A stretch of 64,000 bases of DNA from Takakia lepidozioides. Taxonomy: Eukaryota; Plantae; Bryophyta. Of this stretch, positions 2,961 through 34,878 are shown piece after piece. Each line of letters opens with the position of its first letter. Positions within the stretch are counted from its first letter, which is position 1. The notes beneath the pieces are model-generated. The model was given only the letters and a program-made list of their open reading frames with translations, had not been told where the DNA came from and did not search any database. The stretch spans positions 28,520,001 to 28,584,000 of the forward strand of contig CM060734.1 in the NCBI GenBank assembly GCA_030704615.1, given 5' to 3'. The translations under genes and the position numbers were made by a program.

Positions 2961-3169
2961 GCCCCTTCAAAAATGATTCGGGTATACTGGTTACCATGGG
3001 AAGGTCCTCCTTCCTACTTTTGCTATACAATGCACCTCACCTGTTGGGGTTCATGCAACTCTGGAAATCACTCTGGACATCACTTTGGACTTGGACATCA
3101 CTTTGAAAATCACTTCGAAAATCACTTCACATGTAAACTTCCATATTTCTCTCCCCAAGTCATGATTTT

Positions 3170-3199
3170 AACCCTATTTTAATTAATTCTGGACTTTTG
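3170..3199 (+). repeat. Left TIR aaccctattttaattaattctggacttttg
   Basis: Reverse complement of 22251-22280 with 2 mismatches. Confidence 0.92.
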
Positions 3200-3599
3200 G
3201 CTTAAATCCGGACTAAACTTAATATATATTTGTATTAAATTTAATTGAAATATTAATAATATCATGGTGTAATGTGTGATTGAACTTTGTGAAATTTCAA
3301 GTGATGTCATACTTGTTTCAAAATGTGTCATAGAAGAGGTCCATTTGACATTGAAGTGCTCAATGTGAAGTAGCAGTATTGAACAATTCATTGAACGTCC
3401 ACTTGGAAGTCGAATAAAGTAATATTCCATTGCAGGATCATGATAAACAAATGGGTCACATCGAACATGGGCCAAACTCGTACTCTACCATACTCGATAC
3501 AACTTGCTAGTAATTTTATTGATTGAATCTTCATATGAAGCACAATGTTCATATACCACGCCATTGGAATGAATCATGTTTTGGATGTGACAAGGGCAG

Positions 3600-4620
3600 T
3601 AAAATATTAGAATAGCATGAAGCATTCGGAAGAGGTACTAGGGTAGTACAATAAGGTTTGGGGTGTAACTAGATAAAAGTGTAATAAGGTTTGGGTTTAC
3701 AGTAAGGGTAAGGGTTTAGGGTTTGGATTTAGGGTACAAAAAGACAAACAAATATGATGGACTCACACTCGGTAGAATTAAGAAATGGTTGAGGAATTTG
3801 ATATCCCTGTAATCATTCTATCATACCTTATCCAACAAAAAAAAATATTAAAAGAGCATGAAACATTGAGAAGATGTAACATGGTAGTACAATAAGGTTT
3901 GGAGTGTAACTAGGGTAGTACACTAAAGTTATTGGTTTATGGTAAGATTAATGGTTTAGGGGTGATGGTAAAGGTAGGGTTTTCGGTTTGGGTTTAAGAA
4001 CACTATTGGACAAACAAATATGGAAGACTCACAGTCGCTAAAACTTGGTGTGTGTTAGAAGGATATAAAATAAATAAAAATGGAAACAAATATTATGGAA
4101 GAGTCATTGGGCCGGAGAAGTATTTAGATTGAGGATTCGTCCTTGGAACCTGGTATTAAAATACATATGGTTATGGTATGGATACTTCATTCCCAGTTGC
4201 AGGGGAAGGGTAAGGGTTTAGACGTAACAATGGCGTAGGGTTTTCCTTAGGGTTTTCGACGAGGGTTTAGGGCTTGGGTTGAAGGCAGAAATGGTGAGCA
4301 TACATGCGGGAAGATTCGCACTCGCTACAACTTAGTGTGTGTTAGTATGGTACAAAATGGAAATTTGGTTACATTGAGATTTGGATAACAAAATGGTTAT
4401 TATGGTATGGATAGTTGAAAGAGAAAGGGTTCTGGGGTATTGGGTTAAGGTAAATGTTTAGGGTTTTCTAGTAAGGGTTTAGGGTTTAGGGTTTTTGTTT
4501 AAGTTACAAAATAGACAAACACTAAGTCTTATGGAAAACTCCAGACTTCGCTAGAACTTAGTGTTGTTAATAGGGTACTAGTAAGCAAAAAAAAAAAATG
4601 AAGAACCTAATATTATGGAC
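3600..4620. repeat. Degenerate ~240-290 bp subterminal repeats rich in TTTAGGG-like motifs
   Basis: Recurring gactcacactcg..aacttagtgtgtgttag blocks (~3760, 4026, 4313, 4544) and agggtttagggttt runs (~3712, 4263, 4474). Confidence 0.65.
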
Positions 4621-4773
4621 AAGTATTTAAATGAAAGACTCGTCGTTGGAACCTGGACCTAGTATTAAGATGTAACATAGAAAGCAAACTGTAACATGCC
4701 TAAATGCATGTCAATCCAAAACAAAGAAAAAAGCTAGCGCAAATGTGAAGGAGAAGACATTTCAATAACCATA

Positions 4774-4814
4774 ATGGTTATGGTTATGGTTATGGTTATG
4801 GTTATGGTTATGGT
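4774..4814. repeat. (ATGGTT)7 microsatellite
   Basis: Directly visible. Confidence 0.9.
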
Positions 4815-5499
4815 ATGAATAGATTTGGAAAGAAAATGGCGTTATATAACGACTTTTGGGAAGCGCCTGGATCTCATGGGAGAAAATGGATCTGAAGAAA
4901 ACATGAGAGAGGATAAAAAGTCAGAGAGAAATAAAAATTGCTTAAAATTTGAACAACGGAAAAGGACATGTGAAATTTCCTCTTAAACCAGGGCCAAAGA
5001 TGAGAAGTATGAAAATGAAATGAAATGAAAATTTGGTGCAGAAAAGTCGTAGAGCTTAGAGGGAAAATGGAGGAAAACCTCATAGAAAAAACTTGAGGAC
5101 TGGCAAATTGAAAAACTGTATGTCAACAACGATTGAGTAAGGCTCCTCCTAGTGGGAGACTTCAGTGGGAGAATTGGTTATGCGAAAAGCAAGTCCAATG
5201 TTTCAGAGAAGGACTGGAAAGGGGCTATTTTCTTCCGTTGTTAAAAACCTCTTTGACCGAATTTGAAGACTCCAGTGGTCGTGCCGCCCATTTTGTTCTT
5301 GTGATCTATATGTTATGTAGGCGAAACTCCCCACGGTCATCTTTGTTGACCAGGACGTACAGCAGGCCAGCATCCAGCAAACCAGAAACAAAGGACGAGA
5401 ACGTCCACTGGACATTCGAGGTTCAGTGCGACATAAGAATAACAAAAAGGATCCCCCAACGCAAACAAAAGGGCCATATAGAGAAGAAAATTTATTTCT

Positions 5500-8400
5500 T
5501 AAATCGAAGTACTGGAGTTGACCTCAACAATATGTCCTTGGTCTGGAACTCGCTCGCACGACTCGTTTTCTGACTGACGATTAGCCTCCTCCAAATTAGC
5601 GCGCGCCTTCACTGCTTCGGCGGCAGTAATTCTCTTAGTGCTATTCCTTGTCGTATTTTTTCGTGGAGGCATTGTCCACACACATTGTTCACGTGGATCC
5701 ATTGAGGAGGATCTGACGAGTTATACTCCCAAAGTTTTGACCAACAGTCCCTGTACCTTTCCAAGTCTGTTGGGTTACCACCTTTTCTCGGTCTCCACCA
5801 CTCCACCTTCACCTTCTTAAAATTAGGATCCTCCCTTTCGCGGATCACGTCAGATATTGCCACCCCATCCAGACCGGGCACGTACTTGGGTCATAAGGGC
5901 GAACGAGCACAAAACACCCTTTCTCAATATCCTTGATTCAGGGATATTCTTGGTCGCTCACACCTCGGGCCACAGTAAGGTTCTAGGATTTCATCCTCTT
6001 CTTCCACATCTGGCAATATATGTGGATGGATTCCATCTCTGTGATGATTCTTGGACCAATTTGTTTTCGGCCAGAATCCCTCAAGAAGCTGAATACGGTC
6101 GGGAGCTTCTGGAATGGCTTATCCAGCTCGGCGAGAATGTTTCCCCAGTACTGGTCGTATTGTTCCATTCGACCTCTGTAATGATCGTCAAGCATCATTC
6201 CTTTCGTCCAAAAATCCCTGTATTTTTTTATTCCATTTAATGAATGATTTTTCGGAGGAGTCGTCCCCGACTCCCCAGATAGGTCTCCTTGGAACGGCGT
6301 CTGGGTCTCCTTCAGGGAGCTTCGGAGTCCCGTCAGGATTGGACTTCCACATCTTCACGCTATTGTTTGTTGGAAGCCAATCCGAATCAGTAGCGGACTT
6401 CTTGTACTTCATGACGGGGCCAGCCCTCCGCATCCTTAAAAAAACGGAAGACGTGCATCTCCGAAATCCCGACCAACGCCTCTTTTCCATCCAGAATACA
6501 GCCCTTGACAAAATTCTTGAAGTCGGGAACCTCCTGAATAATCTGTGGAATGAACTGCAGATCTTGCGAGGTCATAAAAGACCTCATCAAATCCGAAAGA
6601 ATGTAGGTGCTTCGTTCCTTCAGCTTCTTCGAAAGGTAGCTGAAGAAACCCGTCGATGTCCTCATGGGTGTGTCCGACCATTAGGAACCCTAGCTGGATT
6701 TCTTCAAAAACATCTTTGGCGGTCAGGAGGGATAGAAAAGCAAGCATCCATCTGTTTATTGTCCTTCGCAGAGTTGTCCATTTGCAAGTACAGTCTTCTC
6801 GGAAGTGGACGAGCACCACGTTTGTCTTCCGGCCTGCAGGGTTTAAGAGCATCCAAACATCTCGATTTACCTCTTAAAAGTGATTCGAAAAACTCGTTTT
6901 GAAGTCGGTAATCGAAAATGTTCCTGGACTCGCGACAGGTTGGCTTTCTCCAGCTGGCGCAGGCAAACATGCCAAAGAACAAGTGTAAAGTTTGAATTCC
7001 CTTCCAGAACTCATGAGGATATTTCCGTGAAGCTCACAACGTATCAGGTTGGAGTGACCAGTCCCGTTTAGTGAAAATGGAAGCTGACCCAATCAAGAAA
7101 TCATCTTATTTGGAGTCTGTAGCCTTGGAACAGCTGTTTTCCTATGATCCATTTTGTCATGAATAATATAGAGAAACTCCTCCGGAATCATAACAGACTC
7201 ATTCCTCCAGCTATGGTACAGTCTTCTACACGACTCTTGGTGCCTCAAATGTCTATCAAGCGCTCGTTTGTGTGTCACCTGTTCCGCACTTCTCTTGACA
7301 GACTTCTGATCAGGTCCTTGAACATCTCACACTCCGTGCACTTCGCAAATGTACTCCCAGTTTACGAACCTCCACGTTAGGAAATATCTGACTCCGGATG
7401 CGGCTTACAGCCGACTGCGAGACTCATTGCAACCCGAAAAGTCTGTTGGTCTGTTACAATAAGGCAAGGTCAGGAAAGGAACGTCCACTGGATAGTGGAG
7501 GTTCATGAAACTAGAACCACAGTCGAAAGAGACAAAATCGAAGGGAGGATCATCCACATTGAATCAGAAAAATCTTCCAAGAAAGAAATTGAAGAATGGA
7601 GATTTCATACCTCGTTGGACTCGTCTCGTATTTGCTTCCAGTTCATTTCAGGTGGTAAGACTCTCAAAGTATCCCTCATTCCCTACCCAATGCATCTTGT
7701 CTTATGGGGCATGAGGTCAGTATTTCCGTTGACAATGGACATAATGTTACCCTCTGCCTGAAGTGTCCTTGGGCGTGGCCTCTTCACTCCACGGTTCCCA
7801 TGGAGACTTGACAACCAACCCTGTTTACTCAGCTTTTTGTACTCCATGTATGTGGACGTGCCAATTCCATGAATTGTCCACCAAGCAGTCTCACATACAC
7901 CCACACCCTCAATCGTAACGTATGCCCTGCGAGAGGTCCCTTCCAGCATGTGAAGTCGTTTCGAAACATTCAGTCCGTGTTCTCTCCTCTCATCGAAAGT
8001 GGATCCCCAAAACAAAGTACGGATAGCCAAGGTTTTTTGCCAATCGAAATATTGACAGCAGTGAAGTCTGCAACAAGGTTTGCTGCTCACGAACCGGACT
8101 TCTTCCAGAGTAAGATTCTTCATTCTTTTTTTGGAGTGTTCCAAATCTCGATCCTTCTTCTTTCTCGTAAAATGCCGATACGCCGCTTTTATCACACCTA
8201 CCTCGTGATCTTCGTACAAGATACTGTCAGAGGATCTAATAAAATTCTCCAGATCATTTGAGAGTAGTCTCCCACTTTCCAAAAGTCGTGTTTTTGTTAA
8301 AGGCCATTTTACAAGAGACATCAAAGATCCAGAACCTCCAGAAAGTATTCTGGTGACAAGAACTCCAACATCATCCTCTCCCAGTTTGTCATTGAGGATC

Positions 8401-8696
8401 ACCTCGTCCGGAATGCAGGCTTGAATCCTCCCCTCGAATAGTGCACCCCCATCATCACCCAACAGTACGCACTGCAAGTTTCTCCAGTTGTTTCTTCCGA
8501 GTCCTCCGCTCGGATTCCCGGAACTCTTCGATGGTCTGTGGTTTGATTCATCCTCGTCGACGTCAAAAGTCTCGGTAGTATCTCTTGTCTCCGGCATAAA
8601 ATCAGGATTCATGTCAGGCCCTCCTTGATACTCGTTATTCTCCGCAAGAACTTCGCCAACATTCCACATCACCGGGGTCCCAATGGCCTCCTTCAA
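5500..8696 (-). pseudogene. Sola-like (DUF7869-type) DDD transposase, frameshifted
   Basis: Concatenated frames give PCCRLHCC..VCETAWWTIHGI..LHGNRG..DLMPH (7683-8696), FAKCTEC, HLRHQESCR, IIHDKMD (~7150), LYLQMDNSAKDNK(N) (~6770), FLMVGHTHEDIDGFFS (~6660); several frameshifts and stops. Confidence 0.8.
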
Positions 8697-11383
8697 GGTG
8701 TCAGCATCCTATGTCCATAAGGAGAGGACATAATGAGTGTGCTTCATCACAGGAGATGAGAACCACTGAAATTGTTGAGGAAGATAATTGTTGTCCATGA
8801 CTGGTCCCTGCGACCCCGGAGACATTAAGGTAGTTCCCAGTGGGAGATGAAGACCCGGGAAGAGTAATAAACACTCTTTGACCCGTCTCTAAGATCATGA
8901 TCACCGGAACCTCCACTGCACATGCGAGGTTCAAGAAACTGAAAACCCCTCCGTGAAGACCTTACTGACAGTAATAAGCAGTATGAGTGAAGACTATATT
9001 CAGAGATGAATCAATTCAATAAAAGGAAATACACTCGCGTATGAACGTTTCAAAGAAGTAGAATAGAAATGGAATTGTTGTTTGGTCTGGAACATGTCAT
9101 TTGAAGATTGTGTCTAATTATATAACCTCCACTGTACAGTGGGGTTAGATGAGATACAGATGATGAAAAAGTCGGACGGATGAATATTAGTGGATGAACA
9201 TGGTTACGTGGATGAATAATTGTAATGACGGATGGATATAAGCATTGACGAGACTGTCCAATGGAGGTCCACGACTTGAGGTATAACGAAATACAGAAAT
9301 TGGAGAGTATTGGACTGTAATTTCTAAACATGCAATGACAAATAAGTAGATTTCCTGTAGAGTATCGAAAACACATAGATGTCTCAACATTTTCTACGGG
9401 TGAAAATGCAGTTCACATGAGAGATTATGGAAATTCAGAGAGTTACACCTGCGATAGCCACAGAGGTACAGGATGCTCAGAGAGGTGCAGTATGGGAAGC
9501 GAGGTGGGAGATGACCAGAGAGGTGCGAGAAACACAATCTCCAAGTGAGAGGTATGGAGATAGAAGTTTGAACAGTTTGCACTCATACCTTATATAGAGG
9601 TGGAAACCAGGTTGCCCGTTGGAACTCCTCCAATGGGATAGTGCGATACATTGTCTCGCGGATCGATTTCCGTCCGCCGTTGATATCCGATATGGCCACA
9701 ATCGAACGGTTCTAGATGGTGCAGGAGTGCACTCTTTGACCGATTTCGGAAAAGAGTGTCCTTTACTGGTAGATCCCTATGTAACAATTATGATGCCAGA
9801 AAGATAACGGCCGATAACGGTGGTTCAATGGTTTCGCACTCGTGCTTATAAAGCAGTACGTATTTCGCATTCAATGTTGTCCAAGTGGATGATGGCCTAA
9901 CACCGATGACAAGCGTTTCATGAAATCGTGCAGCTATGACACTCGGCCGAGAATGTGGCAGGCGTAAATGAGTGACAGAGGAAATATTCCAAGCCTTAAT
10001 CCGCCGAATGTAGACATGGTCAGGAGCAATAATTCCCAGCGGCAAAAACGCCGCAAGAGGATCTAACTTGTACATTTCACTTGTACATTCATTTAGTCAC
10101 GTGTGGGGTGTGGGAAATATCCCGCGGGGTTATAATTGATGATCTTGTGCAAGGGATCATTAACATCATATTTTCTCGTTCATTCATCTGTTTTTTCATT
10201 TCATCTAGTCATTCGTAAAATGGATGGATAGAATGAAATGGATGAATTGGATGACATTTGCATGGATGTTGGATGGAACACGCGCGACCGTTCGATTTCG
10301 AAAGGACGCAATGGTTCAGATCCTTTGCGACGGCACCATATAAGGGGTGTGGTCGTTCAGCCCACCCTTTCGCCACTCCATTGTGTACGCGAAAGCGCTG
10401 CGGAAGTGGTAAGACCGACTAGTGCTAGAAAAGAGAGAGTTTTGAAGAGGGGAGAGCGTGAAGAGCAGAGACTGTGTTGTGCAGGGTGTCGTGAGAGCTG
10501 AGAGAAGAGAGCGTGCAATTCAGTGCAGCATGAGAGTGCAGTGGAGGAAAGGAAGCAGACAGCGGATTCAAGTGCAGACAGGAGACGGGAAGGAAGCAGA
10601 GCGTAAGGGAGAGCGGAGCGGAGGGGTGGAAGCTTAAGGGTCAGGCGTTTCAGGTCAGCAACAGGGGCACCGAAATGGCTCACGCATCTAGCAGGTAATG
10701 TTCTCGTTTACGCATGTGGTTTGATGTCATTCTCTCTTGCTCGCTTGTCGTTATCTCATTCTCTCTTTGTTCTGTTTGTTGATTTGCTTTTCTTTTTGTT
10801 TTGCTGTTGCTTTTGTTGGTCAGCATCGCCCACGTCGCTGTTGGTTTGCTTCTCTTCCTCACTCGATTTCATTCCAGAGGTTATAGAGCACCATTGGATT
10901 CTTGCATGTCGCGTTTCGTGAGTGTGTTATCTTGTCTGATGCGGAGCATCTATTTTCCATTCATGTGGTTCCAAAGCTGTTTCAATTAGTTTGAATTGAT
11001 TAAAGCTGTTTAGGTGTTTCAATGCATTGCTGCTTCTCTGCTGGTGGTTTGTATGGTGGTTGGTATGGGTGGTTTGTGGTCCTGGTTTACTGGTGCTGCT
11101 GGATTATTAGGGTTATGGATTAGGGTTATGGCGGGTTAGGATCATGGTTTATAGCGATTTTTTTTCCGAATTTCCGATATTTGATAACGGGTTTTTCTTC
11201 GAGGCTAGGCTACTCTAGTAGACTAGTCTCCGTAGACCACTAGACCTCTAGTAGACCTCCATAAACTCCGACAGGACAAACCACACGAACCTCGCCTGCC
11301 CAGTGGAGGTTCCTGCGTGTTACTATGCCAAGGCACAACATAAGGATGTATTGAGATAGACTTATGTCGGTTCCTCCCCTGCG

Positions 11384-11950
11384 TTGATTTTTTGTTCTGT
11401 CAGTATAAAAAGAACGGGCGTAGGAGTGCACACGGTGGCCAAAGATGGTTCTAAGACCGTCGTCGACATCTGTAAGAGAAGACAGAATCCGATAAGCATC
11501 AACGAATTACTGGTTGTATCGAAAACAAAAACCTTCAAGAAAAGATCTGAGAATCAAATATCAGATGTGGGCTCTGACGTGCGAACCTTCATAAATCCGG
11601 GCACTGACGAATCAATGTTCGAGGGAGTTATTCGACGGGAGACAACGGAGGAAAAAGAGGAAGAGAAAGATGAAAGTGATGAGTGTAATCTTCAGTCTGA
11701 TTCAGATAATGACATTTATGTAGGAGATAGTGAACAGTACCCGGAATCTGTCCTTCCGTCCTCTCCAGGATACACTCCTCACTCTCCTCAGTATGCAGTC
11801 CTTGTAAATTCTCCAGAATATGTCCCTGCAGATTCTCCTCAGTACATCCCTGGAGATTCTCCAGAATACATCTCTGGAGATTCTCCGACATATACCCCTA
11901 GAGAGTACTCCCCTGAAACCTTGAGGATGATTCGAGAGAGCCTCCGGTAG
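11384..11950 (+). CDS. Acidic protein or exon with RNA Pol II CTD-like Y-x-P-x(x)-S-P repeats
   Basis: SPGYTPHSPQY..SPEYVPADSPQYIPGDSPEYISGDSPTYTPREYSP at 11762-11917; start codon uncertain. Confidence 0.55.
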   Translation: MIFCSVSIKRTGVGVHTVAKDGSKTVVDICKRRQNPISINELLVVSKTKTFKKRSENQISDVGSDVRTFINPGTDESMFEGVIRRETTEEKEEEKDESDECNLQSDSDNDIYVGDSEQYPESVLPSSPGYTPHSPQYAVLVNSPEYVPADSPQYIPGDSPEYISGDSPTYTPREYSPETLRMIRESLR

Positions 11951-12492
11951 TTATTGTAGATACAAGAAAATGAAAAGATGAAACTCATCTTACAAAATAA
12001 TATCGATTTCTTGTAGAAATTATGTATTCGTTGTAGGAACAATTTTGAGACCGCATGATGTATGGAATGGCGAGACGAGCCTTCTCTGAATAAATGTATT
12101 ATTCTTCTTATAAGTGAAATCGTTTTTTCCTCCTGAATTGAATTCTTTTATATGTCAGCTATGAGCGTGTGAATTGTTGAACCTCCACTGGACAGTGGAG
12201 GTTACTGTCCTGGGAATCTTGTATGGTTATCATGATAGGTGTCTGACGACCGAGGTGGTTTATTCTGTGGACAACAACATCACCCCGAGGGATTGTATTG
12301 TTGGAATGTGCAAACCTATATGTGGTTCATTGTTTTATCGAAAATCTCCGAATTTCAAGAATGATCACCTGGCAATTTTTGAGCTGAGAGATCACAGAAT
12401 GGGGCATTGTACCCGTTGGCACACCTCCGGACCATAAGTTCCGGTTCCAATACAAGATTGGTGTAGAGGTCGCCGAGCTCAAATATGCAGAT

Positions 12493-15400
12493 GTGGTCGA
12501 CGTAGAGCTGGAAATGGATGTGGAATTTCCGATGTTGGTAATGTTCATGATGGAAGATGGTAGATTTCCCAGAACGTTTGGCTTCAAACTTGAGGTACAA
12601 ATTCTAAGGAAGGCCATGATGAGAGAGTCCATTCGGGCGGGGTTCACATATTGCGACGAGGGTACTCAATTTACAGATGAAGGTTTTTGCATGGCTTGGG
12701 GTATTTTCTTGGATGTGCTTTACTTAAAGGGTAAGGAGATTGCTAAGACGCGGGAGGAGGAGGCTGCAAGAGTGAAGCCAAAGAAGGGAAAACGGAAATC
12801 CATTGACGCCGGTGGTGATGACAATGAAGCCAGTACATCAGGAGGAAAGAAGAAACAAAAGGAGGAGATGGATCCTGCGTTCATGACACATACCAAGAAA
12901 CCCAAGGCTGCAGACATATTCGACAAAGACAAGTATGAGAAGATGTTGGAGAGGCTGGAGCAAGACTACAAGGACATGTTTCCTTTTGGGTTTGAGGCGA
13001 CCCACGACGTCAAAGTTTCCATGATGGAGCTTGCTCCTAGGGATATGGTGTACAGGCCCCTAAATGTGAAGCACAAAGACGAAGTCAAAGCGCGTCTTTA
13101 CCAGCTCCGGGTGTTCGACTCCAAACATCCAGTTTATTTGATTCCCGCAAACCCCAAGAAGCCTATGGAGGTTTCTAGTTCGAAACCTCGAAACTGGAAG
13201 GAGGTGGAAAATTCCAGATTCTTCGTCATCGATGGACAACACACGATCATTGCTGCCAAGGTAAATTTCCCTACAAAATCCAATTTTTGTAACAACATGA
13301 ACCTCCACTGGACAGCAGTGGAGGTTCATGAACTTTAAACAACATGCTTGTCAGGTCGATATCATTTCTGACCTTATTCAATTCTGTCGCAGGAACTTGT
13401 GCAAGACGTGGACGACGACAATCTTAAGAAGTACTACACTGACTGGCCCTCAAAGATTATATGGTCAAAAGATCTGATGAGGCTCGTGAAGCTATCTAAG
13501 CTCCTAAACGACCCGAATAAGGTGCAAAAATTTGACACAACATTTGCCGAGAAAGTTGCACATGCCCGAAATTTCTTCGAGCTGAGGGGGAGGCCGAAAA
13601 AGTACAACGATCACACAACGAAGTCGGAGACTAGACAATGGAAGGTAAATGATTCATTGTGTTTTCCGTTCCTTTTGCTAGGTAACCAAAATATTTTTAA
13701 GCTCGGATTTAATGTGACAAACGGAGACCGCATTACGAAGCAGGAGACACTACAAAAATAGCTTCATAAGGGAGGGTGCTACAATGAATGAGCGGGATGG
13801 TTCAGCATTCGGAAATTCGACATGATGGGGTCTTTTGTAATGTGTCTTGTTTGGTAATGAGGTGCTTGTCCAGCTCTTATTTTCCCAATCTATTTATGTT
13901 CTCCACCTGTAACAGTTCCGCAAATGTGCCACAAAAATACTTGAAACATCATATGATCATGAAAACGTGATGTTGCGGAGAACGCTTCCAAAACTTTTCA
14001 TGCTCATTAGGTTTTTCAAGGATTTTCTAGGTACACTCTTGGAACTGTTCTTGGTGGAGAACATGAACAGATTGGACAAATTTGACTTGGAGGAGCACCG
14101 CATTCCGAAGCAGGAGACACTACAGAAAGAGCTTCAAATTATAAGGCACAACAAGATGGACAGAGATGAATTGACAATCGAATCATCACTTGGTGTATAG
14201 TATAATTGACATGATAGTTGTGACTATTGTTTCATCTCAAAAATTAATATCAAATATCGAATGAAATGTCTAACTTTGGCCCTGATAATTTTTGTAGGAA
14301 TTTATGCAAGCATGTCAACTCATACTGGAGATGAATAGCATGAAGGAGGCCATGGTTCTGGTTCTCTGTGACGAAGACGTATGGAACCTATGGGAGGAGG
14401 TTTTCAAACAGTGGGAACAAAGGAAGCTTATTGATATTTTCGGGATTCAGTGCAAGGGTGAACAGCTACCGCTGAATAAAACCGCTATCGCGAAACTGCA
14501 AGGACTTAAATAGCAGGCAGTTGAAAAGGGTGGCGGAGAAAATCCTAAATAGAGACATTTGCATTCGGGGAACGAAATTCAAGGGCGCGGACAAATCCAA
14601 AAACACAATGAGCGCGTATATTGACCAAATAAAATTGCGACGGTTTATTATCGACGATGTAATGGAAGTCTTAGGGTGGCCTCGGAGGAGCAAACAGAAC
14701 CCGGAACCGTATACCAAACAGGAGTGGCGTGATATTAAAAAAAAATACAACTTCAACAAAGGTGAGTTTGAAACATTTCGAGATAGGCTCGGGAACGACT
14801 ACATTGTTAGTAAACAGAAGATGAATATGGAGACGCAGCCAATGACTGCTGCCTTCAAGAAGTATGTCTTGTTGTGCAAGCAGACCTTCGAGGATAACCA
14901 GAATGCCATGGCGATTCTACGCACGAGCTTCAGGTCCCATTACACACAGCTGGGGGGAAACCAAAAATTTGCTGATGCCAGATCACGGTTGGGACTTGCA
15001 CCAAAGAATCGGTTCGATGACATATCTATGGTGTTTGTCAATACAGTTTGTGATGATGACTCTGTTGTCTTCGAGGCAAATGACTACTCAAATATCCTGG
15101 ATGCTTTTGTGGCTCGGAAGCTCATGTCCAGTGCTTTTGTGTTTTTCTCGACACAAGAATCATCGGGAAATCTTGTGTCATACATCCGGAATGCCCCTGG
15201 ATCAAAGTCGTTTATTATCCGACAGGGTTATTACATTCCCGGCGAGTTTGAATCACCTTACAAGAGCTGCACGACTATTTTCTCCCGGACGGTCCTCTGC
15301 CTCGACTACGTATTTCCGGCAACAACTAAGGAGATGGTGAATCCGGACGACCACATTCAAACTGTTTTGTTATCGCCGGACCCAAGTAATCCCGTTATCC

Positions 15401-15900
15401 AAGGACCAGATATAGACCCGACCTCGCAGGAGAAGGAGTGCAGGACTTACCATCATGAGCTGAGGCCGGACACCTACGATTACCTGGTTTTTTTTTTTTG
15501 CAGGGACGGAATGTCTTGTGTGAACATTTTCGGAGGACTGGCAATGATATACGTTCTGCTTGTAAGTGGATTCTGCATCTTGGAATTGTTTGTGTTTTCA
15601 ATTTTCCCCGATTTAACTCTCGTATTATTGACGTTGTCATAATAGCGTGTTTAACCTGTGTCTGATTGTTTCCATTTTGTTAACCTCCACTGGGCAGTGG
15701 AGGTTCATGTTATTGGAGTTGTGGGTGTTTTGGGTGTTTGTTATTCTGCAGTTTGGTGTGTTTGGTAGTTGTCTCAAAATAAAGCCTAACCCTTTCAATC
15801 TTTCGATGGTTGGTGTTCGTCGGATTTATTTTGATATCATTGTTTGGTTTCATTGCAGGAAAGAAATATTCGTGTGCTCGACATAAACTTTGTAACGAAA
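12493..15900 (+). pseudogene. Spliced cargo gene: ParB/Srx-like (DGQH) domain fused to a degenerate beta-class N6A/N4C DNA methyltransferase-like domain
   Basis: FFVIDGQHT at ~13219-13245; frame-preserving GT-AG introns 13261-13392, 13645-14297, 15562-15858; one +1 frameshift at ~14510; C-terminal HHELRPDTYDYLVFFFCRDGMSCVNIFGG...ERNIRVLDI resembles HP.QKP..L...LI.....GD.VLD.F.G...GR..IG.E. Confidence 0.6.
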
Positions 15901-15959
15901 AAGAAATTTTGTAGAAGCAAAGGTGGAGGCCTATTTCAGGTCCCTTCAGATTGACAATC

Positions 15960-17374
15960 AGACTATCGCATGAGACGGAAATGACGGAGACTCACTGTAG
16001 GATGACGAAGTGGACGAAGAAGATGATGACGAAGGACACGACAAAGATCAGGACGAGAGGAAATGGAGGAGAAACAAGAAGAGGACGACGAGGAGGAGAA
16101 AGACGATGATGAGAACATGGAAATCGTCAACGGAGTCCAGGGGCAGATGCGGCTAATGTGGGAAAGGGAAAGAGAGGGCCGGGAAATTTCACGGTTGGAT
16201 AATCTAGGTAGTACTCCAAATACCCAAGAACGCGTTGCGCCACAAGATGTACACAATCTGGACAGCTCTTCCTCCAGTTCCGATAACACCACAAATAAGA
16301 ATCCGGCTTCTCCAGGGGGACAAGAAGCGACATCGAGGGAGTTAGTTGAAACCCTCGGTCAAGGGTTCACACCTGTGGAAGGTGACGAGGCATTGATTAT
16401 GTCACCGGATCCCGTTAACAATCGTCGTGAGCTGGTGTCCCAGAATGTCACCCAAGAAGTGGTTCTGGATGTAGGTAACAAATGACAATTAGTGAATGTT
16501 TATTCGTACACACTTCTGAATACAATATGACAATATTGTAATTATACATACTTGTGAGTGGAATAATCCGAATGTTTTTCCATATGACAATATTGTAATT
16601 ATATAAAATCCCAATGTTTTTCCCATATCCGTCTTTCAGGACTTCCGAATAAAACATATTTCCACCCGGATACATATTTCCGTTCGCACACCTTTGTGGA
16701 CAGCCACTAACCGATTTGGATAACTTTTCTTGTAGATCCAAGAATCCAATTCGGAGGAAATGACACACACAAGAAAATGATCAAAAGATACTCAAACGGT
16801 GAAGAGACACGTGGATCTGACAGTGAGGGCCAGGTCACCTGAGCCGGTTCCACAAGTAACCTCCACTGTCCAGTCAACGTTGCCATCAAGGGACGCAGGG
16901 ATTGAGTCGGAGAATCCTCCTACTCGTGGGGAAGGAGAAGAGACAGAGCACCACAATCGCGTAATCCAACAACAGATCCCGATTCGGGTAAAACATTGGC
17001 TTTCTTCTTATTACTCTTATTATTGGTCTTTTAGTCTCATCTTCAGTATTGCTCAATTCGGTAATTTTGTCAGATCATTTTGGACCACCATAGTCGTCAT
17101 CCATGGGATTTTTCATTAATTTCCTGTAGATTCGTGAGACGACGTCTGAGGAGATCAAACACACGAGGACCGACTCCATCGACACTGAGATGGTGAAGAG
17201 AAGAGTGGATCGAACAATTACTGTCGCTCTATCTGAGCCGGTCATACAAGTAACCTCCACTGGACAGTCGAGGTTGCCATCTGGCTCCACAGAGAAGGAC
17301 GAAAACGTTGGACGTAGAGATGGGAAAGAGGAGGAGCAGCCTGCCCAGGGATCTCAGCAGCTAACTCCAAAACG
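15960..17374 (+). CDS. Acidic/low-complexity exons, including a duplicated exon pair (~16736-16987, ~17130-17374)
   Basis: D/E-rich ORF 16063-16485; paralogous peptides VKRHVDLTVRARSPEPVPQVTSTVQSTLPS and VKRRVDRTITVALSEPVIQVTSTGQSRLPS, each bounded by tgtag|...|gtaa. Confidence 0.5.
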
Positions 17375-17529
17375 GTAATGATTTCAACTCCATTCTTCCG
17401 TTTGTCTACTTTGGGATTTCTCAAATTGAAATTAATAATGAACTCTTCTGTTATTCCACATGACAACATGCATTACCCTCCAGTCGACTATTCCCTTTCT
17501 GTCAATCCAAACAATCTGCGTTCCCTTCC

Positions 17530-18267
17530 TTGGGGACCGAACGGATGCCGGCCAGGATACTACTGGTTCTGGACATCGGTTACCTTTGTGAGGTTTTCCT
17601 AAAGGATGGAAAGAAAACACCTCCTGCCACCCAGCCTTGTATCTCCGCAGGGAAAATCAAGTTAGCTACACGAAACGGTCTTGACGAATTCGTTAAGTGG
17701 GTCGTCAAAAAGTTTGCCGTTTGTTTTTGGAACGCTGGACCTGAAATGAACGTCGAGACTATCGCCAAGGCCGTGTTCGGGAAGTACTATTCCCAGGTCA
17801 TAACTTACAGCAGTGAAAATTCCGTCATGCATAGATCGACATTCAACGAAAAATGGCCTAAAGCTCCCAAAAATCCCATCTACTTTAAACGTCTTTACGA
17901 CATTTTCGCTGAGGAACACCCGACGGCTTACAAATCCAATACTCTCCTCATCGACACTGTAGACAATATGTACAAGTCCTACTTGAACCCGTTAGGACAT
18001 ACCATCTTCCTTCCAAAATATAAGGCGCGCGTGGACCCTGACAGGGATAAATTTCTACTGGAAGAGCTCAAGCCTCACCTTAACATGTTCCGGTTATCGG
18101 GGATGGATGTCATGCCATTCAACGACCTACATCATTTTGGCGTTTCGAAGGATTTCTTCGAGGACGACCCAGCGGTCAAATTTCTTAGAGACTTTGATTA
18201 TAGGTGGCAGAAGTTCCTTAGCAATCTCGAGTTGCGTGCCGCTGCATTGGGACATAAAATATTTTAA
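17530..18267 (+). CDS. FCP1/SCP-like (NIF, HAD-superfamily) phosphatase domain 1
   Basis: LLVLDIG..., TRNGLDEFV, AVCFWNAG, YFKRL, SNTLLIDT, KSYLNP. Confidence 0.75.
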   Translation: MGTERMPARILLVLDIGYLCEVFLKDGKKTPPATQPCISAGKIKLATRNGLDEFVKWVVKKFAVCFWNAGPEMNVETIAKAVFGKYYSQVITYSSENSVMHRSTFNEKWPKAPKNPIYFKRLYDIFAEEHPTAYKSNTLLIDTVDNMYKSYLNPLGHTIFLPKYKARVDPDRDKFLLEELKPHLNMFRLSGMDVMPFNDLHHFGVSKDFFEDDPAVKFLRDFDYRWQKFLSNLELRAAALGHKIF

Positions 18268-18399
18268 CTGAGTTTGGTGAACCTCGGCTATCCAGTGGAC
18301 GTTCTTGTTCACTTGCCTGGTGTCGGTTTTCCAATGCATTGTACTGTTCCCTTTTATTTTATGAATGACTCTCTGGCAGATTGGAGTCTCCTGCGCAAA

Positions 18400-19092
18400 G
18401 GTGCTTGATTATTTTTGAAATGGAGTCTTGTGAAAATCTTGAAGCACTAGAAGAGCTACAATGTCCCCCGGTTTTCAGAATCGGACTACAGAATTCCAGC
18501 TCTTGTCGGATTCTGACTTGTCTTTAGATGGGAGAAATATCGCGAAGTGTGGACAGAGTTGCACAAACACTACTCGTCAGGGATTTGGAGCTCTATGATG
18601 TACAAGAACTTGCAGCGCATCCTGGATTTTTTGCTTCGTGGTCTACCTCAACCGGCCTTCGTTATGTCTCAAGAGGATTGTATTTCATGCCCTACTTCGG
18701 TTCACCCTCAATTCAAATCAGGATTGGACCCTCCCCATTTGTTTTTGAAGCCACTGGTCAAGGTCTGGAAGGGATTTGGTGGGCAATACACCAAGAGTAA
18801 CACTCTGCTCATTGACGACACCGCCATGAAGTGTATATTGAACCTGCCCGACTCATGTCTTGTTCTCAAACCGTTCCAGACCGTTGAGACTGATGGTTGC
18901 TATCTTCTCAAGATTCTTCAGACCTATTTGCTTGGAATGAGGAAACATCCCACTGTTTCAAGCTATCTTAGGAAAAAAATGATAGGGTTGAGTCTTTTTC
19001 CCAATGTTTCAAACGATCCCAAGTTTAGTCCACTCTGGGATTTTATTGAGGACAACGGTTTTAAGAGTCTCAGATATGATGCTTCAAAATAA
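18400..19092 (+). pseudogene. FCP1/SCP-like phosphatase domain 2 (N-terminus degraded)
   Basis: GIWSSMM, SQEDC, LFLKPLVKVW, YTKSNTLLIDDTAMKCILN. Confidence 0.8.
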
Positions 19093-20653
19093 ATTATTTT
19101 TGATCAATCCCATCTCACTCGAGCTATTGAATATCTTCATGGTTTCTCTTTTTCATTTCCTTGTAATCACACACGTAAAAGATATGGTACTCTCATTTTG
19201 ACTCATTTTTCAGTTGAATTCTTGACGTACATTCCGGGCAATCCCAAGACTCTGATACAGGCCTTCATACGGGGACATGACTATATCTAGTGATCTCCAC
19301 TGTTCAGTGGAGGTTCGCTTTCTTGCATTCTCGGATTTATGATTATGTCTCTTTGGCAGGTTCAAGGAGATGCTAACAACGTCATCGGTTCCTCAAGTCC
19401 CCTAAAGGAACCCTCCGGATCAGCTGTGAGTCGGAGTATTGAAGGCTTTCCGAGGGTTCACGATGGTGCTCAAATTGAGGATGGATCCTCTGTCAGACCC
19501 TTGTCCTCCCGGGAAGTGGGCGACACTCTTCTCCTCTCGGGTCCTCCCGGGGGTAAAGTCCAAGGTGCAGGTGAAGAACACAAATATCCCGAAGACTTTA
19601 TCGACCTTTCCCAACATTCCTCACCCTCCCTGTTCAGTACGCAGGGTTTGGTCTATCCAACCCGCAGGGCAACCGTCGGGGACTCGACTACAGCTCTGCT
19701 GCACCTTCTTCCGTCTCTTCCTCGCATATCTCCCCAGCACGAGGGTTGGACAGCCCAAATCCGCAGCAGTCAGGTGACTTAAACTCATTTCTCGCTCCTT
19801 GCTCATTCTCCTAGTTTCACTTAGTTTGGGTCTGATATTCATCTGTCGCTCCAGGTAAGAAAATCTGCAGATTATGACATTCTTGTCAAACGACGTCTGC
19901 ATTGGAATGCAGTTCCGAGGTAAATTATTCCTTCGTTGCGTTTTCATTCCATCCAGGATGTCGAGTGCTCAAGGGACAATTTTCTGTGCTTGCCTGTTGT
20001 TGCCCCTCCACTTCTCCCGTCGTTCAATGGCAAAACATCTCCAACATCGACACAGCGTGACCCTGAACTACTCGCACAATATTCTGCACCAAAGAGGCGA
20101 AAAGAGCCCCCGAGCCATTTCCTTCCTCTGCAAGGAATCATTCCAAAGGACAAAAGGCTGACAAGAAAAAAAGAACGGACTCCAAACACTTGAGGACTCC
20201 CTCGGATGTTGTGGCGCCTTGTCAATCCAAGCCCGCGGGAATCCACTGTTCTTCTGCAAGACATTCCAATAAGGCTTCAATGGTACATTTCAAAACAATT
20301 TCTCCACTTTCGTTTGCAGTTTGTTTTTCTGTCCCAGACTAACTCCGTAATTTCTATACAAGCAAGTATGGAGCCGCATAACTTCTTGAATGCGCCTCCC
20401 GACAAGGTGCGTCCACTAACCTCCACTTGACAGCCAACGTTCATCTTTTTGTGATCTCAAACTCTTCGATATATGGTCTACTCTTGGTCATTTACAGTAG
20501 TCCATTGTCGGGACACTTATGTCTCAGAAAACGTAGAGGTCACTCTGAAACTAAGAAACACGACATCGTGTTGTTTCTGACGGCGGGAACACTTAAATTG
20601 CGCAGGATGGTATCGTCCATCAACCTTCATTTGCCACATCGGGGAAGAGGAAA

Positions 20654-21352
20654 CGGATGTTGTTAATATTGATGTCAACGGTCTCCTTTACTACCGGCCA
20701 CCTCCAACCGGCGGTGAATTGTTTAAGGAGAGATTTCGTTTCAGGAAAGTTACAGTTCATGTTCCCGAAAGGCCTTTTGTGGTTCCCCGGCCCAGAGTCT
20801 TGGAGTTTCTCAACCTTGCGTTCATGTATTTTCACGTGACGATCTGGTCATGTGCTGAAAGACATGTTCTTTGTAGGATGCTCGAGTGCTTAGTTCCTAC
20901 GAAAATTGCGAAGAAGTTTTGCTTCATCTGGTTAGCTGAGGATTGCAAAGACACTACCGGTTACATCATGCCTGGGATGAAATATCTCGTTAAGGATATT
21001 CGTACTGTTCTTGCCAAGTACCCTGGTATACCCTTTGCAACGCAGGGACAAATACTCCTTGTTGATGATGAGCCATCAAAGGGCCTCCGAAACCCACCAA
21101 ATACTGGATTCTTCCTTATTTCATACAAGCCATCACCAAAGGGATTGGTTGACCAGGATGATATGACAAAAGTTGTGTGGCCCTATATATTGAAAATGGC
21201 TGCAGCTTCAACAGTCGTAGATTACATCAGCGAGAACCCTGCCAAGTGTTCTCGTAAGCCTATTAGTCGTGACCATGCCTATTGGGCTTGGTACGGAAGA
21301 TATGTTGATCCTCGTGTTTGGATCCCACAACAAAAGAAACCTGATTACCTTG
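20654..21352 (+). pseudogene. FCP1/SCP-like phosphatase domain 3 (1-nt frameshift near 20669)
   Basis: MLLI/DVNGLL, PRPRVLEFL, VTIWSCA, FIWLAEDC, LVKDI, ILLVDDEPSKGLRNPPN. Confidence 0.85.
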
Positions 21353-22250
21353 GTATGTACTTATCCCACTGTTTGTTGTTTATGGAGAATTTGATCTTGA
21401 AAGTGTCTTCCACTTGCACTTTTACTTTATTATTTTTTCTACAAATGTTCCACATTTCAGTTGACATTTGTCAAATGAAAAACTGTTTTGCCCAGTCACA
21501 TTCAAGGAGCGAATTCAAAAAAAAGAAGAAGAGCTTCGTGATTGGCAAGAATGGCGGGCTTTCCGGCAGGCTTCAAGGGCATCAAGAGATTCAACAAGTA
21601 GAGTTCCAAGTAACATTTCGGATGATAATGTTACTACTAGGTTCGAGTTCTCCGAAAGTATTTCCGTTTCATCTGGTGCGGAGACCGTTGCAAGTGGTTG
21701 TGGTAACCGGAGGCGTCTTCGAACACATGCCTTGACTGCGAGCTGTTTGGGAGGAGGCTCTGTAATATTAATGGGTTAGTGTAAGCCGTTGTATGGCTTC
21801 GAGCCGCTGGATAACATTAAGTCCAACGGATGTACAGTTGACGTTACATTATATCTGACTGCAACGCCAAAGTTGCAATCTCTAATAAAATATGAATGTT
21901 TATCATCAATGTATGCGGACACATTCTTTCATATCATCCTCTTCATCACATGCCATGATTGTTCTATGTTTGGTTTTGTATGTCATCTGATATGGCAACC
22001 ATTTTTTGCAAAAAGTTTTACATATCTGACCTCACATCATGGTGTAATTTATTGCATCATCCCAATTTTTTCGTGAACGTCAATTTGGTAGTGGATGTTC
22101 TTCTAAAACCACAATACATACTTATATTGTCTCCAAAAAATGTTTGGAGGATTATATTGTGTATAAAATAACCAAAATAATCATATATATCACTTTATTT
22201 CAATAATAAATTTTGTTTATTCATATTTCTCATATTATTTCTGGACCAAA

Positions 22251-22280
22251 CAAAAGTCCAGAATTAGTTAAAATAGTGTT
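22251..22280 (-). repeat. Right TIR
   Basis: caaaagtccagaattagttaaaatagtgtt, inverse of 3170-3199. Confidence 0.92.
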
Positions 22281-24200
22281 TTTTACACAGTCACCCACGC
22301 AATTTCTCTCCAGCTCATTATATGTATGACATACGTATCTGTGTGATCTACTAGCTCCCTGAGTCATACTAAATTTCACATTCATATCTCTCTCCCCAAG
22401 TCATGATTTTACATAGCGACCCACGCAATTTCTCTCCAGCTCATAATACGTATGACATATGTATTTGTTTTTACTCACCAGTGCACTACCCACGAAATAT
22501 ATTCCACCCACAACCATCCATCCCACCCAAATTGGGCCCCGCCGCCATTCATTCGCAGGCCTCATCCATACCCTCTATCATCCAAGCTGTCACTTTCATC
22601 CCCATCCTTTGCCTAAAGCCCACATCAAATTTAACCATAGGCCACGCTATGTGTTGTCACAATCCCCACACTCCTCTAATCTGCTACATATACATGTCAA
22701 ATATTCCTACCCATGCACTGTTCCCTTGTCTTCATCAATACCTTGTGGGTAACAAAAACCCTCCTAACCCAAATACTACCACACGACTCCCATCCTCTAC
22801 TCGTCGTCATCTCCTAAACAGCTACCACCCATCCTCTACTCAACATATTGCACAACCCGCATATCAAGACCTGTATGCCAAAAAAATACCATCAAATATG
22901 GCGCATCCCAGACATCTCAACCCCAAATACCCATACAATGGATTGGCTTTATCTCCCAATCAGTATGCCCCAAGTCCTCACTATGCACTACTCATCCCTA
23001 GATCACTTTGCCCACATATTACCACCTCTCAAACTGTTGCCCAAACCCCATCAACCCCCTCCCTGAATGAAACCACATCACCCCAACCCACAACGCCTCA
23101 CGCATGGTGCCCCACCGGGATTGCTCTCATGTTGTTCTCCCGACCCCCGCCACAAACCCCTCAAAATAAACACTTCATCCAACCAACTCCATCCATACAT
23201 TTATATGAATACATTAATCTAAAGGACCCACCCACCTACCTCTTCCTTCCTTATCTAAAGCCAAGACCCACCTCATACCCGAAGGCCGCCCTCAACCCAT
23301 ACCCTGACTGCCAAGCATGCCCTCTCATTAACCTAAATACCATTAGCCCACCCATTCATACGCCAGCAACCAGCTCCACCTATACCCACTACGATGCCGT
23401 AAAAATCACCCTCCACATATTTTCATACACTGCTCACCCCCCAAATACCCCTAGACCACTCAACAGACACCTCCTAACCCACTCTCTACACAGCATATAC
23501 CACTGTCGGCCACCTGCATCCAAACACTCCCGCCATCACCCACCATCCCACCACAAGACCCACCAACTAGCATGCGCACAGATTATGTTAATACGTTGCA
23601 GGGACATCCACCCCAACCCGGGACCCCCTACCATCACCAGTATCATTAACAACCTACCAAAGGACCACAAAGAACGATATAAACTATATTTCCAAAAAGA
23701 CACAGTCTCTCTAGCCCCTGCATACCAACACCTAAGCGACCATTTCTTCCCCTTTTTTCGTAGCTCTTCCACCAATACACGCCCACCCACACAGCCAATA
23801 GCCACTTTTGGACTCCCTGCCTGCCAAAACTCAATGCTAGTCACTGTCACTCATAAACTCCACCTATACCCTCAACAACACATTCTCTTCTCACTAATCA
23901 TTACCATCTCCCCAATCCCATCAATATGTAATGACTACCTGGCAACCCACCCAGACACACAAATACGCTCACTTCTACAAAAACTACACAACTTACCCAC
24001 ACACCCCCACACTTCCTGCATAACCTTCACAAATCCCTACATTTACTACAAACCAAACCCTACAAAGTCCACCAAATATTAAGTGAACACTTAGCAGACA
24101 CATCTACAAACATACATGAACTTGACACCATCACTAACAAATTTCCATTCCTATCACAAAACATCCTCACTGCAACCCTCCAAGCCAAAGTAAGCATTCC
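22281..24200 (+). mobile_element. Degenerate non-LTR-retrotransposon-like relic with a 2A-like motif; continuous with ~2200-3169 across the giant transposon
   Basis: Strong C/A strand skew, 559-codon open frame, MLIRCRDIHPNPGP at 23585-23626; no EN or RT motifs remain. Confidence 0.45.
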
Positions 24201-24959: not shown

Positions 24960-24975
24960 CTCGAGAAAGATGAGC
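24959..24975 (+). promoter_or_regulatory. Putative self-priming primer-binding site
   Basis: actcgagaaagatgagc is the exact reverse complement of 24779-24795 inside repeat A; no TGG tRNA-type PBS here. Confidence 0.7.
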
Positions 24976-34877: not shown

Positions 34878-34878
34878 T

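Follow-up and report, generated by a model that had tools for sequence, protein, structure and literature searches.

The 64,000-nucleotide stretch of Takakia lepidozioides DNA analysed here (hereafter the window) contains one decayed copy of an old lineage of 19–21-kb Sola-like DNA transposons of early land plants. Families of this lineage are each studded with a 22–24-base palindrome of their own and share a conserved gene for a ParB-like, pseudo-methylase and pseudo-phosphatase protein, a combination that suggests an undescribed mode of transposon self-recognition and self-regulation.

Structure, transposase and relatives of the element

The ends of the element and its features other than cargo exons and palindromes are as follows, with the strand given where one was assigned.

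3166–3169: left target-site duplication TTTT, flanking the left end
3170–3199, plus strand: left terminal inverted repeat (TIR), 30 bp
3600–4520, plus strand: subterminal region containing repeats of 241/266 bp along with degenerate hexamers of telomere-like sequence
5609–8708, minus strand, 5′ limit provisional: broken DUF7869 (Sola-like) transposase with an intron near 7457–7610 and several frameshifts or stops
13833–14127: foldback in a cargo intron, 133-nt arms, 74%
22251–22280, minus strand: right TIR, a terminal match to the left TIR
22281–22284: right target-site duplication TTTT, flanking the right end
22376–22475 (approximate), plus strand: empty paralogous site in a tandem duplicate of about 120 bp, with a single TTTT at 22407–22410

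The two TIRs match at 28 of 30 positions and are not the exact repeats that a sequence-only reading of this DNA had reported. The 4-bp duplication and the empty paralogous site described in that reading do stand: TTTT lies on both flanks, and the rebuilt pre-insertion sequence aligns to a tandem paralogue about 120 bp downstream, which has one TTTT and no insert. A homopolymer duplication such as TTTT is ambiguous when taken alone, but a complete relative of 20.9 kb in another genome, with homologous TIRs and the same layout, has a TTAG duplication and the same AA..TT termini. The left TIR of the window is almost identical to the TIRs of an AT-rich sister clade (e.g. L036), and telomere-like hexamers occur at 8.7 per kb in the subterminal region as against 0.3 per kb in the window outside the element. 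In-frame stops and frameshifts in both the transposase and the cargo agree with the decayed copy first described. That the span might consist of several nested insertions, which had been named as a possible refutation, is not borne out, as relatives share the layout; the small foldback is the only candidate nested piece.

A minus-strand Sola-like transposase opposite a spliced plus-strand cargo, as first proposed, is confirmed by the divergent cargo exons and by DUF7869 matches in three frame-shifted minus-strand pieces (Pfam, E = 1e-13, 8e-5 and 6e-5); a word-index protein search with the N-terminal piece of the transposase gave no match. Three Asp motifs, HDKMD (7147–7161), QMDN (Asp at 6776–6778) and GHTHEDID (EDID at 6652–6663), are candidate catalytic motifs and are kept between the window and its relatives; from the motif pattern, we infer that they form a DDD catalytic triad. 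Conserved Asp motifs, a 4-bp duplication (TTTT; TTAG in the complete relative) and TIRs of 27–30 bp are all features of Sola, a superfamily with a reported TIR range of 11–1124 bp (PMC10741241). In a tree of transposases from the fetched loci, the window groups with putatively plant-derived loci in one clade (support 90). CACTA genes near L001 and L006 raised the question of a CACTA carrier; in L006 the TIR ends the element ahead of the CACTA fragment, and such a carrier was rejected there.

The same layout with a DUF7869 transposase is found at two loci of another genome, homologous TIRs close the cargo in L004, L006, L008, L015 and L101, and the order of ParB fold, methyltransferase (MTase) fold, acidic linker and FCP1/NIF domain is repeated in at least seven distinct relatives. 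The co-occurrence of transposase, cargo and palindrome in other genomes, suggested earlier as a check, is found. In the ParB, MTase and NIF domains alike, synonymous sites are saturated while amino acids are conserved (pS 0.65–0.94, pN 0.21–0.53). Judged by these sequence comparisons, the cargo is old and under purifying selection, and is neither a Pack-type capture nor a product of nesting; the neutral or captured cargo against which the earlier reading had guarded does not agree with an order common to distant elements and with pN below pS. Its remaining objection, copies with the same TIRs and no cargo, holds in part: such copies exist, but in the only complete one half of the transposase is missing, and it seems to be a deletion derivative. 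Set against this, neither ParB nor MTase turned up near any of 80 transposase-baited metagenome loci, though most of these contigs lack the length to show one and the long ones are decayed.

Folds of the cargo protein

The spliced cargo, which was searched exon by exon, encodes in order a ParB fold, a helical region, a beta-class amino-methyltransferase fold, an acidic linker and FCP1/NIF. The exons and domains of this region in the window, all on the plus strand, are as follows.

11404–11950: exon with an acidic stretch and six SPxY motifs, absent from all relatives
12240–13260: exon with an N-terminal domain without assignment, a basic linker and the initial portion of the ParB/Srx-fold domain, up to DGQHT
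13393–13644: exon with the remainder of the ParB domain, a conserved Asn and two helices
14298–15561: exon with a basic helical region and a beta-class amino-methyltransferase-like domain without catalytic motifs; frameshift near 14510
15859–17374: acidic/low-complexity exons, including an internally duplicated pair (16736–16987 and 17131–17374)
17520–18267: NIF/FCP1-like domain 1, motif I DI-GYL
18392–19092: NIF/FCP1-like domain 2, motif I degenerate; frameshifted
19359–20193: low-complexity linker exons
20560–21352: NIF/FCP1-like domain 3, motif I DVNGLL

The exon at 12240–13260 has a frameshift near 12390–12437; the phase-0 intron that follows it is kept in AT-rich relatives, and the intron after WK, at the end of the next exon, is kept in relatives. 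Both ParB-like exons are found by a profile that contains no rows from the window (E = 7e-36 and 6e-13). A model of the domain (P0021; from relative L004, not the window protein) has a pLDDT of 82, its best Foldseek matches in the PDB are ParB/Noc (E = 4e-4 to ParB), and the viral matches include phage ParB and ParB-methylase proteins (ranks 13 and 17). By this modelling, the cargo domain is predicted to have the ParB/Srx N-terminal fold. The arginine patch GERRxRA was not found in the ParB-like domains, which have GQH(S/T)xxAxK throughout, and this reduction to GQH(S/T) makes CTP-driven sliding doubtful. Helices lie after the ParB N-terminal domain and before the MTase fold, in a region that spans introns; no helix-turn-helix (HTH) was identified after the N-terminal domain in the models, which cover single exons. 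No ATPase that could be a ParA partner was seen among the open reading frames (ORFs) of the element or the genes called in related loci, and neither a PHROGs search nor a ParB scan of viral contigs gave a match. Prokaryotic genomes gave one ParB match (L018); this contig of 4.2 kb has a spliceosomal intron and carries the palindrome of the P0021 clade, and we take it for plant contamination of a MAG.

The MTase-like exon of the window gives a match to a profile built without window rows that is weak but full-length (E = 0.008; 1633 window ORFs), and its gene order and intron positions are the same as in relatives; a word-index protein search with this exon gave no match. For the model, made from the L004 exon and not the window protein (mean pLDDT 58, core 60–88), all of the top 50 PDB matches are MTA1, METTL3/14, CcrM, HpyAVI or MboIIA. 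As modelled, the domain has the permuted Rossmann fold of beta-class N4C/N6A methyltransferases, to which the link from the window is weak but full-length. The profile matches and the L004 structure models together uphold the ParB-like and MTase-like fusion of the sequence-only reading. The catalytic (D/S/N)PP(Y/F) and SAM-binding FxGxG motifs are absent from the domain, with only IFGG/IFSG/YTG remnants, and the DNA-methylase fold is apparently dead, a pseudo-methylase.

The NIF domains of the window match Pfam above the cut-off (E = 7e-7, 1e-4 and 2e-8), and the NIF profile finds human SCP1 (E = 7e-6); a PDB sequence search with the first domain alone gave no match. The three FCP1/SCP domains reported earlier thus hold for the window but not as a family trait, since relatives have one or two. 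The catalytic motif of FCP1/SCP phosphatases is DxDx(T/V). Aligned to DLDET of SCP1, motif I is mostly DxNG (DI-GY, a degenerate form and DVNG in the window; DLNG, DING and DLNR in relatives) and is DxDx(T/V) in no NIF domain examined, which speaks against the dephosphorylating role once proposed; the CTD-phosphatase fold is apparently dead as well, a pseudo-phosphatase. The SPxY repeat (11783–11904) is real, but its period is 24 bp or 8 residues, as compared with 7 residues in the Pol II CTD, and no ORF with three or more SPxY was found in loci L001–L098, so that a CTD-like repeat ORF can no longer be counted as part of the system.

Palindromes and their candidate binders

5400–22099: 14 copies of a 24-bp palindrome, half-site AAC[C/G]TC[C/G]ACTG with a 2-nt spacer, starting at 5400, 7480, 8908, 9124, 11288, 12180, 13300 (3 nt longer), 15682, 16858, 17252, 18280, 19292, 20418 and 22076

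As the sequence-only reading had noticed, the element is dotted with its own palindrome: all 14 copies at up to 6 mismatches lie inside it and none in the other 45 kb of the window, and 10 copies remain at up to 3 mismatches, where 0.00 are expected. They are spaced about 1.3 kb apart along the whole element, mostly in introns and non-coding DNA, with two in exons. A search of the metagenome collection for exact copies of the motif gave none, which leaves no sister copies of the exact window family and no consensus. Each lineage has its own 20–24-bp palindrome, placed mainly in promoters and introns, with at least nine unrelated motifs among the loci compared and no cross-matches among the window, P0021-clade and L005 motifs. 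Four ParB subfamilies pair with four unrelated palindromes, and one palindrome is preserved across elements with saturated synonymous sites. This lineage specificity strengthens the idea of self-recognition.

What binds the palindromes? In the reading that we favour, and to which we give an even chance, a dimer of the ParB-pseudomethylase would bind them and control transcription or chromatin of the element in the manner of VANC, most likely as anti-silencing. The cargo protein would dimerise through its ParB domain, read the half-sites with its helical region or with the target-recognition surface of the methylase, and load along the element that encodes it, in the way of ParB from parS, while the acidic and NIF parts would engage the host transcription machinery, probably the phosphorylated Pol II CTD, as binders and not as enzymes. 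The outcome would be control of both transcription and chromatin of the element, specific to its family. Most likely this would shield it from silencing, as VANC does, or alternatively it would be negative autoregulation; deleted copies that retain palindromes would be served in trans. More tentatively, and on balance doubtfully, the system may be a eukaryotic counterpart of parS/ParB, in which a prokaryote-derived ParB-pseudomethylase loads at lineage-specific palindromes, spreads over the 20-kb element and engages Pol II via the pseudo-phosphatase, giving a diversifying lock-and-key form of anti-silencing with many natural specificities.

Since ParB, transposase and palindrome are co-inherited, covariation by itself cannot name the binder. 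The transposase might bind the palindromes and so regulate itself or counter silencing, as TnpA and AtMu1 are reported to do, with the cargo doing something else. Transposases can activate cognate copies (bioRxiv 10.64898/2026.08.24.746577), and palindromes lie upstream of transposase genes without visible cargo in L023, L024, L030, L036, L071 and L093, of which L071 and L093, outside the plant clade, each have an internal palindrome of their own. However, L036 is a deletion derivative without the N-terminal half of its transposase, the other contigs end before the cargo region, and the promoter and introns of the cargo have clustered palindromes too. In addition, palindromes bear no resemblance to the TIRs, and the window and the AT-rich sister clade have nearly the same TIR with unrelated palindromes and ParB domains only 28–40% identical; the palindrome changed while the TIR hardly did, and so does not follow the known target of the transposase. 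We consider binding by the transposase distinctly unlikely.

Unlikely too, if deserving of serious thought, is an architectural role, in which the ParB-like protein would sit on the palindromes and act as an accessory factor of transposition, bridging or condensing the 20-kb element for end synapsis. Bridging and condensation of DNA are known activities of ParB (PMC7333895), most Sola elements are much shorter (2–9 kb; PMC10741241), and in the window the sites are spread over the full length of the element. In relatives, by contrast, promoters are where the sites gather, away from the termini (in the complete relative they cluster upstream of both genes and avoid the first 3.4 kb), and the conserved NIF domain would be left unexplained.

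The promoter clusters arose by short tandem duplication (periods of 57–110 bp in L004 and 78 bp in L007), which might point to host transcription factor sites accumulated by the elements, with a cargo devoid of sequence specificity; sites of this length that differ wholly between lineages and are absent from the 45 kb of flanking host DNA make this improbable. We give least credence, very little indeed, to RNA hairpins or cruciforms, or remnants of a tiny mobile repeat. Many palindromes do lie in introns, and symmetric arm changes in the P0021 clade slightly exceed a within-locus shuffle (23 vs 16.7, P = 0.009; P = 0.10 without the outermost position). However, all 37 arm deviations in the window affect one arm and none is symmetric or compensated, the pattern to be expected if half-sites are read on double-stranded DNA. 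The loops are only 0–3 nt, some copies stand in frame within exons and others upstream of genes, and the flanks are unrelated, with no evident duplications around the copies.

Relation to known systems

Sola elements (Bao et al, 2009; PMC10741241) are alike in DDD-type motifs, a 4-bp duplication, short TIRs, occurrence in moss and some members over 15 kb. The present elements differ in their length of 19–21 kb, their divergent multi-exon cargo and their lineage-specific internal palindrome. The Physcomitrella element Sola1-1_PP, of about 15 kb, may carry an NIF-type second gene, in which case Repbase may already include this lineage. Nothing relevant on ParB with bryophyte transposons, Sola1 in moss or DUF7869 was found in the searchable literature, the original Sola paper lying outside its coverage; even if the transposase is the binder, a eukaryotic transposon with conserved ParB-fold cargo appears to be undescribed there.

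Phage ParB-methylase loci and eukaryotic ParB-linked N6A methylases share a ParB domain upstream of an amino-methyltransferase fold, and loci of the phage type are a plausible ultimate source of the cargo; the published eukaryotic cases, from chlorophytes, chytrids and haptophytes, have not been described as lying on TIR transposons (PMC4738411). In the present cargo, by contrast, the catalytic motifs are lost and there is no PHROG match. ParB/parS, Noc/NBS and KorB are alike in the ParB N-terminal fold and in multiple palindromic cis sites near the gene, and ParB spreading can alter transcription kilobases away (PMC7333895). Unlike bacterial ParB, the present protein has GQH(S/T) in place of GERRxRA, no ParA, no identified HTH and an MTase-like and NIF fusion, and is encoded by a spliced eukaryotic gene. 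The NIF domain is common to the cargo and to FCP1/SCP CTD phosphatases, with DxDET changed to DxNG or worse in every cargo copy examined.

Most of what is known of transposons that counter silencing in a sequence-specific way comes from Arabidopsis and maize. If the preferred reading is true, the ParB-pseudomethylase would be a separate answer to the same problem, assembled from the folds of bacterial partition proteins and methylases in a different superfamily and plant lineage. Its 20–24-bp dyad sites can be read directly from sequence, and at least four protein–site pairs make specificity, coevolution and mechanism open to direct tests in Physcomitrium or Marchantia. Orthogonal long-site DNA binders acting on plant chromatin could also serve as tools.

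There is a parallel in logic with VANC/VANDAL, a transposon-encoded protein with cognate non-coding motifs that are tandem-duplicated and differ between related families (PMC5735166; bioRxiv 10.64898/2026.08.24.746577). An extra transposon protein and family-specific, tandem-duplicated non-coding motifs are common to VANC/VANDAL, TnpA/AtMu1 and the present elements, in which binding is putative. No homology to MULE-related, VANC, TnpA or other plant transposon families was detected in the cargo ORFs, and, in contrast to VANC/VANDAL, the present system belongs to another superfamily (DUF7869, not MULE), has long dyad sites instead of short motifs and employs cargo folds of prokaryotic type.

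Ends, insertion site and relatives of the element

The Sola-like element is closed by terminal inverted repeats (TIRs) that match less than perfectly:
3170-3199 and 22251-22280, TIRs, identical at 28 of 30 positions
The two mismatches correct the sequence-only reading, which had called these repeats exact. Its 4-bp target-site duplication and empty paralogous site are borne out: TTTT lies on either side of the element, and the pre-insertion sequence rebuilt by in silico excision aligns to a tandem paralogue 120 bp downstream with a single TTTT. Also as described there, a transposase on the minus strand lies opposite spliced plus-strand cargo; the transposase is a DUF7869 protein in frame-shifted pieces with in-frame stops, and the cargo exons are bounded by canonical splice sites. 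The element agrees with the Sola superfamily on the criteria checked. Degenerate plant-telomere-like tracts occur near one of its ends (3600-4520) and upstream of the ParB gene of a related metagenome locus (L001, 4300-6050), and are absent at the corresponding end of the complete relative described below.

With the first ParB-like exon as query, 25 relatives were recovered among 1.8 billion representatives; a ParB-like profile search gave 65 matches, nearly all additional to these, and a transposase-baited scan 80 loci. The order ParB-like, methyltransferase-like (MTase-like), acidic linker, NIF recurs on the relatives' contigs; on that of L005 no NIF was seen. Two long contigs of one assembly, followed upstream of the cargo, carry opposite-strand DUF7869 transposases, which diverge from the cargo just as the window's transposase does. 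Transposase, cargo and a palindrome do co-occur in other genomes. One of the two contigs holds a complete relative of 20.9 kb, whose TIRs are 27 bp long and whose target duplication is TTAG; it settles the 4-bp duplication and the AA..TT termini, and its TIR type bounds cargo in four further loci. Since cargo order, divergent transposase and closing TIRs recur, independent nested insertions were rejected; Pack-type capture was rejected because the cargo order is common to distant relatives and the cargo is under purifying selection.

The transposase tree retained 62 of 79 rows, near-identical or short rows being excluded; frame-shifted pieces were anchored on a query with X in place of stops. 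Overlapping views of one natural contig were merged (L017 with L014, L016 with L007), and none of the contigs was judged to be human. The tree places the window transposase within a clade whose loci are putatively from plants, adjoining an AT-rich group with an almost identical TIR. In that group, one locus (L101) holds ParB, NIF and a right TIR together, and the 10 kb upstream of the group's ParB genes showed no transposase. Cargo-less copies exist as well; one of them (L036, 4.6 kb from TIR to TIR) looks like an internal deletion derivative, because the N-terminal half of its transposase is missing. Elsewhere, two related elements are inserted tail to tail (L016, 1589-7683), with transposases about 80% identical and the same palindrome in separate promoter clusters. 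A spliced plant transposon fragment within a cyanobacterial MAG (L018, CADCWO010000074.1) is likely contamination.

A cargo of degenerate enzyme folds

We infer from phase-0 splice sites that the ParB, MTase-like and NIF domains form one fusion; a foldback with 133-nt arms lies inside a cargo intron (13833-14127). The ParB and methylase folds proposed from sequence hold in models of relatives. The ParB region of P0021, a relative, was modelled at pLDDT 82, with ParB, Noc, PadC and KorB as top PDB matches and phage ParB proteins, ParB-methylase fusions among them, as viral matches. The bacterial arginine patch is GERRxRA (PMC7333895); the cargo domain has GQH(S/T) in its place, with a downstream Asn retained, so that nucleotide switching is uncertain. 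The second domain, modelled from L004 with moderate confidence, matches beta-class amino-methyltransferases only and lacks catalytic and SAM-binding motifs. The window exon matches it weakly but over its full length (E 0.008), and gene order and intron position back the view that it is probably the same domain. Ahead of ParB, some 150 N-terminal residues form a further domain that is conserved in the P0021 clade (L004 532-1200, L007 10001-10400, L018 1990-2500) with no match in Pfam or PHROG.

All three NIF domains of the window cargo score past the Pfam cut-off, as the FCP1/SCP assignment had it; relatives carry one or two, so the triplet is no family trait. They align to SCP1 without the second Asp of DxDxT, which matters for activity in HAD phosphatases. 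The NIF domains are therefore probably catalytically inactive, and the proposed dephosphorylating role is not supported. The CTD-like repeat falls away too: this SPxY repeat has an 8-residue period, occurs in no relative and was dropped from the system. Between relatives, a comparison for which the window copy is too distant, synonymous sites are saturated in all three domains (pS 0.65-0.94) against non-synonymous values of 0.21-0.53, in keeping with selection on the cargo. With three degenerate enzyme folds retained under selection, the cargo would be a binding or scaffold protein.

Lineage-specific palindromes and their candidate binder

The element is indeed dotted with its own 24-bp palindrome: 10 copies at up to 3 mismatches, with none expected, and 14 at up to 6, all internal; the remaining 45 kb of the window has no copy. 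The dyad differs by lineage, being 21 bp in the P0021 clade (L004, L006-L014 and L018, with a variant in L015), 22 bp in L005 and, in the AT-rich clade, a site whose core measures 14-16 bp and which occurs near ParB genes as well as in copies that lack cargo. No cross-matches link the motifs of the window, the P0021 clade and L005. Other unrelated dyads lie upstream of transposase genes in L023, L024 and L030, whose contigs are too short for any cargo to be seen. Two loci that fall outside the plant clade have such dyads as well:
L093, 583-3102, DUF7869 transposase with its own internal 22-bp palindrome
L071, 663-1998, DUF7869 transposase with its own internal 22-bp palindrome

The complete relative has 19 sites inside the element, concentrated within introns of the cargo and upstream of the two genes, and promoter clusters expand by 57-110-bp duplications. 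The P0021-clade site is under selection, as it is kept across elements with saturated synonymous sites. In the window each arm varies on its own, and tolerated variants recur at positions 4 and 7; in the P0021 clade symmetric change is at most slightly in excess. This pattern fits half-sites read by a dimeric protein better than it fits a hairpin.

What binds these sites? Proteins of the ParB family load at palindromes as dimers. The sites are unlike the TIRs, and between the window element and its AT-rich sister clade they have changed wholly alongside a ParB only 28-40% identical, while the TIR is nearly constant. The most likely binder is therefore, in our judgement, the putative ParB-fold cargo, which would bind the palindromes, probably as a dimer. 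Binding by the transposase is conceivable, since the parts are all inherited together and some loci have palindromes but no visible cargo, but sites that differ from the TIRs and are swapped while the TIR barely moves make it improbable. Of the self-recognition first proposed, the palindromes remain, with the ParB-like protein as candidate binder, and their lineage specificity strengthens the idea; the dephosphorylation and CTD-mimic parts are not supported. Control of the element's transcription or chromatin, which we predict with even confidence, is preferred over an architectural role of the cargo in synapsis; the clustering of sites at promoters speaks for the former, as does the NIF domain, and the latter is unlikely.

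Neighbouring features and known systems

The window also contains:
1016-2050, PPR-like tandem fragments with a period of about 212 bp
24633-35395, Gypsy LTR retrotransposon with identical 327-bp terminal repeats, RT, RNase H, integrase and a C-terminal PHD finger
44860-45486, endonuclease-family ORF, probably LINE
56811-58019, LIN-like U-box/ARM gene
60600-61600, 221-bp tandem repeats

The PPR fragments and the LIN-like U-box gene, together with the sequence context of the relatives, suggest a non-seed land plant as host. The Gypsy element is broken into many frames (27316-34618) despite its identical terminal repeats, so assembly indels could account for some frameshifts in the window, those of the Sola-like element included. 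At 29654-31417 the retroelement carries ORFs with similarity to a Dnmt3-type cytosine methyltransferase (DNMT3A, E 0.004). Dnmt3-carrying Gypsy elements have been reported from the charophyte Klebsormidium (PMC5890265), and an apparently young one in a probable land plant may merit separate study.

A Physcomitrella Sola element may include a NIF gene. Long moss Sola elements have already been reported (PMC10741241). Our search, mostly of papers readable without subscription, found none on ParB-fold cargo or lineage-specific palindromes of a eukaryotic transposon. We would class the element with DNA transposons that bear a self-targeting accessory system, and there is a real chance that the mechanism of such elements is new. 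The VANC motifs of VANDAL transposons likewise occupy non-coding DNA, occur as tandem repeats and vary from family to family (PMC5735166); the logic of the two systems is close, whereas no homology between them was detected.
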